DNA of 64,000 nucleotides, counting the filler, from Lenisia limosa (Eukaryota > Protista > Breviatea), in the NCBI GenBank assembly GCA_001655205.1. It is 11 parts of 11 records of this genome, joined end to end, with 100 filler letters (N's around TTAATTAATTAA, not from the genome) between each part and the next. Parts side by side here need not be neighbours in the genome. Positions count along the whole stretch, not along the records: positions 44,366 to 46,073 come from LPNZ01005017.1; 10 more parts are not named here. One strand, written 5' to 3'. The position numbers were made by a program, and so were the translations under genes. Below are positions 44,266 to 46,524 of this stretch, piece after piece. How positions within the stretch are numbered: the first letter of the stretch is position 1; each line of letters starts with the position of its first letter. Under the pieces are notes generated by a model. The model did not search any database. It was not told the origin of the DNA and saw only the letters and a program-made list of their open reading frames with translations.

Positions 44266-44381
44266 NNNNNNNNNNNNNNNNNNNNNNNNNNNNNNNNNNN
44301 NNNNNNNNNTTAATTAATTAANNNNNNNNNNNNNNNNNNNNNNNNNNNNNNNNNNNNNNNNNNNNCCCCCCCCCCCCCTAG

Positions 44382-45976
44382 GCCCAATGGTATATGGTAT
44401 TGCATACTGCCCGGTTGAAAATCACGACAAAATCAAAAAGGAAGGCTTTGATGGTGGGGAGGGGTACCTGACATAAAAAGGAAGGCTTTGATGGTGGGGA
44501 GTGGTACCTGACATAAAATAATCCTTACTTACAACTATTCCAAACCTTCTACTCTTACATACAGCCGAATTCTTCTATTTAGGACTCTATGCAATTAATT
44601 GAGACTGAGACATACACATACATCCATATGTAAAATTTTGAATCGAAAAACAATAAAATGGGCACTTCATATTCTTACAACTTATATAATCCTCATACTC
44701 TTACACTCTTACAACTAATGTAATCCTTCTATTCTGACATTCTTATTACTGATTCAATCCCTATTACTACATTGTAGGGCCGAGTGCAATTAATTGTTAT
44801 CTTGTGACTCCAAGATTCATGCAACTTTTGACAAATATTAGATTCGAAGCAGGTGACAAAGGAGAAGCGTGAGGAGCTCTTTGAGATCATTGAAAAGGAA
44901 GAAGATGGGCTCAGTATCGGGTATGTGGGGGGAGGGCTGTTTGCAATTGATTTTACACCAGCATGTGAAAGAAAACCCCCATTAAAGTGTAAAATGAATG
45001 GATGATATTGCCCTTTATGCTCGGAAGTTATATTACCCTTCATAAAATCGTATTGTCACAATACACACTTGATGATGTGAACAGCTTCGGCCTGATCCTT
45101 TTCTACTCACTATACTCCCGCGGTGCTGCAGAAGCGACTGGCCTGAGCTTTGTTTGTTTTGCTATCACCCCTCGTGTGTTGTCAGCCAACAGAGTTAATT
45201 TGGGTTTTTTTATTTTCCAATTTTACCCCCCTCCCCAGATATGCCACATCATCAATGTCTGCCAGCTTTATCTCTGCAGCCATGCTGAAGGAGTGGGGGG
45301 TCACATAGATATATCGAAATTTGCTTTGTTTTACGTTAATATATCGATATTCCACAATTTTCCCATTTTACACCATAACATTCCTTGCTTACCCCCCCTC
45401 CCAGAGCCCCATACAACTTGAACGCTATGAGTCACGACACCGCCATGGGTCTGATTCAGCATTGCCTGGATTTGGGCCTGAATGTGACTGAGGTGCGGCG
45501 GGATGTATTGAATGTGACTGAGGTGCGGCGGGATGTATTGAATGTATAAATAAACTAGGATCATAGAAAGTAAAGTCTCTATTGAAACTAGGATCATAAA
45601 GAGTAAAGTCTCAATTGAAAATGGATCATAGAGAGTAAAGTCTCTCTTGAAACTAGGAACATAGTCGGTTGACTGGTACACAAAACAAAAACACACGCAC
45701 AGAAAACGACAGAAACAGAAAGATGGGGTGGACAAAAAGGCTTCAGCCAGATACCACCTTGTTTCATTCTCAACTTCACATTTATAATAATTCCCCCAAA
45801 CTTCACAAACTTCCCAGCTCTCTCTGTATTAAATTCACTCCTAATTCCCCCCATAATTCCACGCTAAGTCCATGGATAATTCCATAAACCCCCAGCTCTA
45901 TGTCGACACAGTAGGGCCTGCTGAGAAGTATGAACAGAAGCTCAAAGGCAGATTCCCCCAAATTGCTCTCATACAG
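44382..45976 (+). CDS. RNASEH2A: Ribonuclease H2 catalytic subunit A, internal fragment
   Basis: Exons 44382-44453, ~44841-44920, 45239-45292, 45405-45492 and 45896-45976 splice in frame to [58 protein letters not shown]. Confidence 0.92.
45123..45238 (+). repeat. Family C intron-3'-end repeat, representative copy
   Basis: GTGCTGCAGAAGCGACTGGCCTGAGCTTTG..CCCTCGTGTGTTGTCAGCCAACAGAGTTAATTTGGGTTTTT..TTTTCCAATTTTACCCCCCTCCCCAG ends exactly at an RNASEH2A acceptor. Copies at ~1714-1790, 2548-2700, 3318-3422, 5629-5810, 5830-5920, 11295-11421, 17314-17436, 18450-18578, 20940-21030, 22607-22712, 46490-46524, 46710-46795, 47411-47435, 48016-48049, 50998-51160, 55740-55770, 58855-58928 and 61480-61555. 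Confidence 0.85.
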
Positions 45977-46524
45977 GTGTGGGGGGGTCTAGACAGATTG
46001 AATTGCCCCGACACAGATCGGGGGTTTTGAATAGTTGATCTGGGCTTCTTTTTTTTGTTTCATAGATTTCCAANNNNNNNNNNNNNNNNNNNNNNNNNNN
46101 NNNNNNNNNNNNNNNNNTTAATTAATTAANNNNNNNNNNNNNNNNNNNNNNNNNNNNNNNNNNNNNNNNNNNNTGTATCAGATCATGTATAAATGGAATG
46201 TGGCAGCTTCCAATCAACATTACCGCCCAGCCTCCTTTATATCATGTGGTCTTTGGGGGTGCCTGCACGCATTATCTTCCACCCACCCACCCCAGTTGTA
46301 AAGGAGTTTGTAGACAGATATATCGAAATCTAGTTTATGGTCTTCTCTCACCCCCCCCCNNNNNNNNNNNNNNNNNNNNNNNNNNNNNNNNNNNNNNNNN
46401 NNNNNNNNNNNNNNNNNNNNNNNNNNNNNNNNNNNNNNNNNNNNNNNNNNNNNNNNNNNNNNNNNNNNNNNNNNNNNNNNNNNNNNNNTCATAAAATTTC
46501 CAAATTTACCCCCCCCCCCTTTAG

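Follow-up and report, generated by a model that had tools for sequence, protein, structure and literature searches.

Most introns of the RNase H2A gene of the anaerobic breviate protist Lenisia limosa open with GT and a run of G and close with a run of C and AG. In this study, we confirm that this intron-end pattern is real and goes beyond chance, and we propose that the tracts are probably a lineage-specific splicing signal of L. limosa with two halves capable of pairing. Breviates diverge at the base of the group comprising animals and fungi, and to our knowledge their gene structure has hardly been described. The window studied is a stretch of 64,000 nucleotides, filler included, joined from 11 parts of the genome assembly GCA_001655205.1. 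Our analysis concerns the piece at window positions 44366-46073 (+ strand, 1708 nucleotides, record LPNZ01005017.1), and the checks covered that piece and a 4588-nucleotide ENA contig of the same locus (L001), found via an open reading frame (ORF) of the window. L001 is identical to the piece over all 1708 bases and extends 2.6 kb upstream and 0.3 kb downstream of it; a window position equals the L001 position + 41773.

The piece carries five RNase H2A exons, each placed by an RNA contig and by translation:

44382..44453, + strand, RNase H2A exon
44842..44920, + strand, RNase H2A exon
45239..45292, + strand, RNase H2A exon
45405..45492, + strand, RNase H2A exon, also a 100% match to a L. limosa transcript ORF
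45896..45976, + strand, RNase H2A exon

The RNA contig, 986 nucleotides long and taken from a polyA RNA run (X2), spans these exons and skips four GT..AG segments (44454-44841, 44921-45238, 45293-45404 and 45493-45895). Its loose ends extend to the neighbouring exons past acceptor 44381 and donor 45977 (loose end at 45978). All ten splice sites within the piece are backed by RNA, in the form of one assembled contig and not of many reads. The label of the run, "metatranscriptomic", fits L. limosa, a breviate cultured with bacteria. Searched against 1.8 billion representatives, the 30-residue exon at 45405..45492 matched a protein of 189 amino acids at 100%. This protein, Trinity ORF P0006 of Lenisia limosa in EukProt, continues exactly into the downstream RNase H2A exons.

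Concerning the gene as a whole, RNase H2A starts at L001 1393 and holds at least eight introns within 588 nucleotides of coding sequence. L001 yields 8 donors and 7 acceptors of this one gene, corresponding to seven complete introns and one further donor (numbers after a letter give run lengths):

i0, L001 1462-2115: begins GTTTGTTGG, without a G run, and ends C6AG; outside the coverage of the RNA contig
i1, L001 2201-2608, its 3' end being window 44366..44381 (+): begins GTAGGA followed by G10, ends C15TAG
i2, window 44454-44841 (+), L001 2681-3068, 388 nucleotides: donor GTGGGGAGGGG (G4AG4), acceptor TTTTGACAAATATTAG, without a C run
i3, window 44921-45238 (+), L001 3148-3465, 318 nucleotides: donor GTATGTGGGGGGAGGG, GTATGT followed by G6AG3 (44927-44936); ends C6TC4 (45226-45236) and AG
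i4, window 45293-45404 (+), L001 3520-3631, 112 nucleotides: GTGGGGGG...TTACCCCCCCTCCCAG, GT followed by G6 (45295-45300); ends with branch-like CTTAC, then C7TC3 (45392-45402), then AG
i5, window 45493-45895 (+), L001 3720-4122, 403 nucleotides: donor GTGCGGCGGG, G-rich without a run; acceptor AAACCCCCAG, C5AG
i6, window 45977..46073 being its start, L001 4204-4332, 129 nucleotides: donor GTGTGGGGGGG, GTGT followed by G7; ends C11TCAG past the piece
i7, donor at L001 4393: GT followed by G12; acceptor beyond the contig

The borders of i1 and i6 are backed by the loose ends of the RNA contig, and i7 by transcript ORF P0006, in which ICAK-VTRD stands at the place where the genome continues into the G run. 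GT..AG borders are found in all four RNA-verified junctions and likewise in the other introns, placed via RNA loose ends or homology. The homology searches used single exons as queries, which limits their sensitivity; a search with the C-terminal part of the protein matched only the query itself, and Rfam and tRNA scans of the locus gave no meaningful match.

An earlier note on this DNA had singled out i4, hereafter the flagged intron, as a 112-nucleotide intron with a GT plus G-tract opening and a C-tract plus AG closing, and sequence and RNA junction agree with that description. The G-rich donors at 44454, 44921 and 45977 and the C-run acceptor at 44381 likewise read as it had claimed and are RNA-supported; the last is C13 followed by TAG in the piece as compared to C15 in L001. 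The G tract starts 0-4 nucleotides after GT, with GGG or longer within the first 16 nucleotides of 7/8 donors, and G occupies +5 in all eight donors and +3 in five. C runs end 0-3 nucleotides before AG and follow a branch-like TNAC (TTTTAC, CTTAC, GTGAC, TAAAC), occupying the 7-19 nucleotides up to AG. The view that a C tract stands in for the usual U-rich pyrimidine tract is borne out: in six of the seven acceptors the last 16 nucleotides are 44-81% C and 6-25% T. Intron interiors have 37% G+C as compared to 49% in exons.

For enrichment, the first 16 nucleotides of an intron were taken as donor tract window and the last 16 as acceptor tract window, and G runs of at least 4 and C runs of at least 5 were counted in L001. 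Such G runs occur at 6/8 donors as compared to 6/121 other intronic GT (about 5%; Fisher 4e-6), and such C runs at 6/7 acceptors as compared to 3/114 other intronic AG (about 3%; 1.5e-7). Within the piece alone, five of the eight G runs of at least 4 fall inside the five donor windows (binomial p 1e-5) and five of the twelve C runs of at least 4 inside the five acceptor windows (binomial p 1e-4).

The earlier note had further proposed that G:C pairing brings the two splice sites together. Folding of the intron ends predicts terminal pairing in four of the seven complete introns, the flagged one included, and to this extent the proposal stands; a separate reading of the two tracts would also fit. 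The four introns (i1, i3, i4 and i6) combine a G run of at least 6 with a C run of at least 6 at opposite ends. Between the first and the last 20 nucleotides 15.2 base pairs are expected for i1, 9.1 for i3, 7.7 for i4 and 8.3 for i6, as compared to about 2 in full shuffles, and the terminal helices persist when only the interior is shuffled. The flagged intron forms a 7-base-pair terminal helix in both the minimum free energy and the centroid structures, and tract duplex energies are predicted at -16 to -37 kcal/mol. In a folded 2.3-kb multi-intron pre-mRNA, i1, an inner tract pair of i1, i3 and i4 pair cognately and nested. G- and C-run lengths, which are (2,6), (10,13), (4,1), (6,6), (6,7), (3,5) and (7,11) from i0 to i6, rise together in the seven introns of this one gene (rho 0.79, exact permutation p 0.021, n=7), a first sign, in that small set, of the within-intron covariation that the earlier note had asked about. 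Interruptions of the tracts are mirrored as well (G4AG4 / G6AG3 on the donor side, C6TC4 / C7TC3 on the acceptor side); T follows 7/10 G runs and A precedes 7/12 C runs. Pairing of the ends is plausible from these predictions, and we infer that the helix would form in vivo and aid splicing.

We consider it quite possible, and propose tentatively, that the runs form an intron-end code whose halves pair co-transcriptionally and juxtapose donor and acceptor, the C run doubling as pyrimidine spacer. At the 5' end, GU would be followed within 0-4 nucleotides by the G run; at the 3' end, a branch-like TNAC would lead into a C run that covers the 7-19 nucleotides to AG and substitutes for the U-rich tract. 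The polymerase would produce the G run first, and the next transcribed sequence able to pair with it would be the C run of its own intron; both would therefore be expected to zip into a G:C helix of 6-15 base pairs. Such a helix would set the donor beside the branch site and the acceptor, with the AT-rich, repeat-laden interior looped out, and helicases would then open it for catalysis.

Among the analyses made, the age of these introns discriminates best between the explanations. RNase H2A ORF fragments of other eukaryotes lose homology exactly at Lenisia exon borders. Comparison with two animal RNase H2A genes, one from a sequencing run of a vertebrate-like organism (L003) and one from the NCBI assembly GCA_013332895.1 (L004), revealed that five of the eight Lenisia introns match animal introns in position and phase:

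i1, shared with L003 and L004: G|G(C/T) before P-M-V-Y
i2, shared with L003 and L004: G|AT of the D in DSK
i4, shared with L003 and L004: last base of the codon two residues before YNLN
i5, shared with L003 and L004: after the codon preceding (L/V)(Y/F)VDTVG
i7, shared with L003 only: after ICAK

For i3 and i6, neither L003 nor L004 has an intron at these places, and i0 falls in an unconserved region. Strong tracts are found among the shared introns (i1 with G10/C15, i4 with G6/C7TC3, i7 with G12). Judged by position and phase, the flagged intron and the extreme cases i1 and i7 are ancient introns. Tracts are present on animal-shared and lineage-specific introns alike and were therefore imposed by the Lenisia lineage, not merely brought by new introns; their presence at ancient positions argues for maintained signals rather than transposon scars. 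The animal introns at the shared positions end in ordinary mixed pyrimidine tracts. In L003 (about 495-515), the intron at the position of the flagged intron also begins G-rich (GTGAGCGGGAGGGG) and ends with such an ordinary tract.

A miniature inverted-repeat transposable element (MITE), here MITE-A, is closely associated with the C runs. Its copies and part-copies in L001, aligned as a set of four, are:

L001 1-59, reverse
L001 2452-2590
L001 3347-3452; this is the copy in i3, window 45120..45225 (+), which ends TTTCCAATTTTA against the C run
L001 4240-4300

The core at 45120-45161 reaches a word depth of about 190,000 in DNA run X1, where the baseline is 31, and MITE-A fragments also occur in the polyA RNA run. 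MITE-A makes up the 3' part of i1, i3 and i6. The fourth copy lies in an inferred intron of a neighbouring gene on the minus strand (L001 about 534-1234), an M18 aspartyl aminopeptidase head to head with RNase H2A, assigned by a recognisable SPFHA motif and by a weak match to Pfam PF02127 that stays below the gathering score (E 1e-4). All four copies lie in the sense orientation of their host gene. In i1, C runs stand on both sides of MITE-A (C11 and C15), the copy of the neighbouring gene has C12 on the side covered by the contig, and the 5'-truncated copies in i3 and i6 abut a C run at their 3' side. MITE-A thus appears, from this arrangement, to insert into or beside pre-existing C runs, which would explain its presence at acceptors without its being the origin of the tracts. 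At its 5' end, i1 carries the MITE-A end in inverted form over 30 nucleotides, such that the ends of i1 form an inverted repeat reaching 17 nucleotides beyond the runs; we take this as a putative second insertion, oriented on the G-run side. The interior of i1 holds a nested pair not at a splice site (L001 2301-2311 and 2441-2451, symmetric GT-G11-TA...TA-C11-AC), which may represent either an inserted element or former intron ends that insertions have split apart. The longest direct repeats over intron junctions are found in i3 and i6, with G(G/A)TATG and CAGGT, read by eye and overlapping the AG|GT consensus; these two introns could, on this weak indication, be transposon-born.

Most intron sequence is single copy (depth 31-41, the flagged intron 34-41), only MITE-A segments are high copy, and whole introns did not fall into any family of nearly identical members. 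The MITE-A core had no match when JGI metagenome contigs, GTDB genome contigs and viral contigs were scanned, and searches with MITE-containing ORFs matched only the queries themselves. Two further repeats occur at the locus. A 33-nucleotide tandem repeat of 3.5 copies lies at 45552-45664 and has a word depth of about 12,000 in the genome. A second short repeat family, with core GGACGGCTTCGGCCAGATA, has seven copies in 4.6 kb, all within introns; a scan for it returned only a chance match in a bacterial contig. Its copies are:

L001 1704-1730
L001 1906-1935
L001 1955-1975
L001 3300-3320
L001 4520-4545
L001 1560-1590, reversed
L001 3955-3985, reversed

The main rival to pairing, and a serious one, is that the tracts are recognised each on its own and complement one another only incidentally. 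The C run would then be a pyrimidine tract read by a C-accepting U2AF65 or a PCBP-like protein and the G run a donor-proximal enhancer, an account that we hold to be possible, if rather unlikely; the same holds for its further specification that the G run is read by U1 (GUGGGG via G-pseudouridine wobbles), by a variant U1 with a C-rich 5' end or by an hnRNP H/F-like protein. Much of the architecture suits it: C runs come directly after the branch-like motif and within 3 nucleotides of AG, G prevails at +5 and +3 of the donors, and introns with one tract exist (i0, i2), of which i2 is spliced in the RNA contig. Tracts on ancient introns suit any functional signal equally. Moreover, GGG downstream of donors aids intron definition in vertebrates (PMC1326234), and a diplonemid possesses an alternative U1 with a C stretch able to pair with G-rich donors (PMC12621601). 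However, independent signals predict neither the correlation of run lengths within introns (p 0.02, n=7) nor the mirrored interruptions, nor the T after G runs and the A before C runs.

A different origin is assumed if the tracts are terminal inverted repeats or insertion scars of MITE-like introners, in which case pairing and correlation would reflect common descent and not function. We regard this as improbable. An intron of the form G(n)...C(n) reads alike in both orientations, the ends of i1 form an inverted repeat with a G11...C11 unit nested inside the intron, and i3 and i6, absent from both animal genes, hold the 3' half of MITE-A and the longest junction repeats. Eight introns in 588 nucleotides of coding sequence mean, furthermore, that some must be gains, and for those diplonemid introns that have inverted G- and C-rich ends a MITE origin has been suggested (PMC12621601). 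Against this, five of the eight introns occupy animal-shared positions and phases, and i1, i4 and i7, with their strong tracts, are among them; single-copy sequence makes up the flagged intron and most intron interiors; complementarity past the runs is confined to i1; and C runs flank MITE-A on both sides, which fits targeting better than carriage. For the flagged intron a pure introner origin is rejected: its position is shared with animals, and it was therefore not created by a Lenisia transposon. Very unlikely, in our view, is a role at the level of DNA or transcription, in which the runs would slow RNA polymerase (R-loops, G-quadruplex, i-motif) or exclude nucleosomes and so mark exon borders kinetically. 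Long homopolymer runs do obstruct polymerases, and the strict strand polarity and the position at exon borders would be in line with such a role, but most runs measure 4-7 nucleotides, separate G blocks are too few for a quadruplex, and placement right after GT and right before AG is left unexplained. Chance or an assembly artefact, such as poly-G read artefacts, is hardly credible. The slight difference in homopolymer length at the edge of the piece (C13 and C15) would be compatible with it, but enrichment stands at p 1e-5 to 1e-7, the RNA contig removes exactly the tract-bounded segments, and L001 and the contigs of DNA run X1, which are possibly assemblies of the same sample, agree with the piece without differences.

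Several observations weigh against an intron-end code that works by pairing. Three of the seven complete introns (i0, i2 and i5) show little or no end pairing: i0 has C6 without a G run, i2 has G4AG4 without a C run and i5 has weak tracts on either side; the RNA contig nevertheless shows i2 and i5 spliced. There is no cognate specificity, every G run pairing equally well with every C run, and cross-exon pairing is predicted between the C run of i6 and the G run of i7. The folding energy of the whole flagged intron is unexceptional (z -0.76). Long G or C runs also lie away from splice sites (L001 60-71, 2027-2040, 2301-2311 and 2441-2451), and the inferred introns of the M18 neighbour (e.g. GTGAGCC...GGTGTAG) are without G or C runs. 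A helix spanning +2/+3 to -3 would cover the binding sites of U1/U6 and U2AF, and in well-studied systems such helices usually inhibit splicing. Finally, the whole evidence comes from one gene. Whole-intron stability was dropped as a statistic, since dinucleotide shuffles retain most of the GG/CC content.

The favoured reading, of tracts as a splicing signal with pairing halves, has a wider form, in which Lenisia would define many introns by a G:C zipper on rewritten ancient ends, partly replacing the U tract and its readers, while a MITE family homes to the runs, keeping its insertions intronic. This wider form we hold to be rather doubtful. If ancient introns were converted to G-run/C-run ends, they would provide a natural experiment on the flexibility of core splicing signals. 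They would test RNA-RNA bridging as a stand-in for protein-mediated intron definition and would show how splicing can be accurate in a genome flooded with miniature transposons. Should the main repeat truly target C runs, a splicing signal would here serve a transposon as a safe place to insert. As a practical nuisance, the tracts break assemblies and gene models.

Further features of the locus concern duplicated and isolated splice-site sequences. Two tandem duplications copy an exon end together with its donor. At 44435..44514 (+; 40 nucleotides x 2) the copied donor is G-rich and creates a decoy donor at 44494; at 45479..45545 (+; 30 nucleotides x 2.2) the copy is in frame, would add 10 residues and likewise provides a decoy donor. 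The RNA contig splices at the first copy in both cases, and decoy donor 44494 is unused. The run at L001 2027-2040 is an orphan C14, 75 nucleotides upstream of the i0 acceptor and lacking a G-run partner in i0; after it comes TTTAAAAG, which might serve as an alternative acceptor.

Bridging of introns by complementary repeats has a precedent, which the earlier note had cited correctly: in fish, AC/GT repeats bridge introns and make U2AF2 dispensable (Lin et al. 2016, PMC4691745). The same work proposed, for 16% of structured human introns, a class with G triplets close to the donor and C triplets close to the acceptor. By this human (GGG)m-(CCC)n class, the bridging idea is already anticipated in kind. 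As in (AC)m-(GT)n and (GGG)m-(CCC)n introns, the Lenisia gene has complementary simple repeats near donor and acceptor of one GT-AG intron and a predicted bridging helix, and it shares with the human class the G side 5' and the C side 3'. Whereas the repeats of Lin et al. lie within about 40 nucleotides of the splice sites, the Lenisia tracts are uninterrupted runs of up to 15 nucleotides that overlap the core signals, the C run replaces the U-rich tract and the host is a breviate protist. The tracts are found in most introns of the Lenisia gene, as compared to 16% among structured human introns and about 1-2% among those of fish. Bridging was shown in fish, whereas the Lenisia helix is predicted from sequence.

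Pairing of inverted G- and C-rich ends, with miniature transposons involved, is also known from the noncanonical introns of hemistasiid diplonemids (PMC12621601) and the nonconventional introns of euglenids (PMC11282704). Those introns have no GT-AG and are probably removed without U1, whereas all introns of the Lenisia gene are GT..AG with G at +5. Being GT..AG and, in several cases, at animal-shared positions, these introns are therefore ordinary spliceosomal introns. Introners (Gozashti et al. 2022, 10.1101/2022.06.06.494994; PMC11282704) resemble the Lenisia case in a genome rich in miniature repeats and of very high intron density, in MITE-A forming the 3' part of three introns and in the junction repeats of i3 and i6, which resemble target-site duplications. 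In contrast to introners, most tract-bearing introns of the Lenisia gene are single copy and at ancient positions. The introner surveys consulted make no mention of Lenisia or breviates, and neither in them nor among the consulted papers that mention Lenisia were its intron ends found described.

Another close system is that of Martinez-Contreras et al. 2006 (PMC1326234), in which G triplets act as intronic enhancers and hnRNP proteins loop out the intron, with GGG at both intron ends and a protein bridge between them. In that work, 20-nucleotide inverted repeats near the intron ends also stimulated splicing in vitro, substituting for the protein sites. The Lenisia gene agrees with this model in G runs just downstream of donors and in elements at both intron ends. 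It differs at the 3' end, where a C run complements the G run; this suggests either RNA-RNA pairing or another kind of reader on that side. What sets the Lenisia gene apart from the known systems are homopolymer runs abutting GT and AG, C in place of the U tract, in most introns of a gene and at ancient positions in a breviate.

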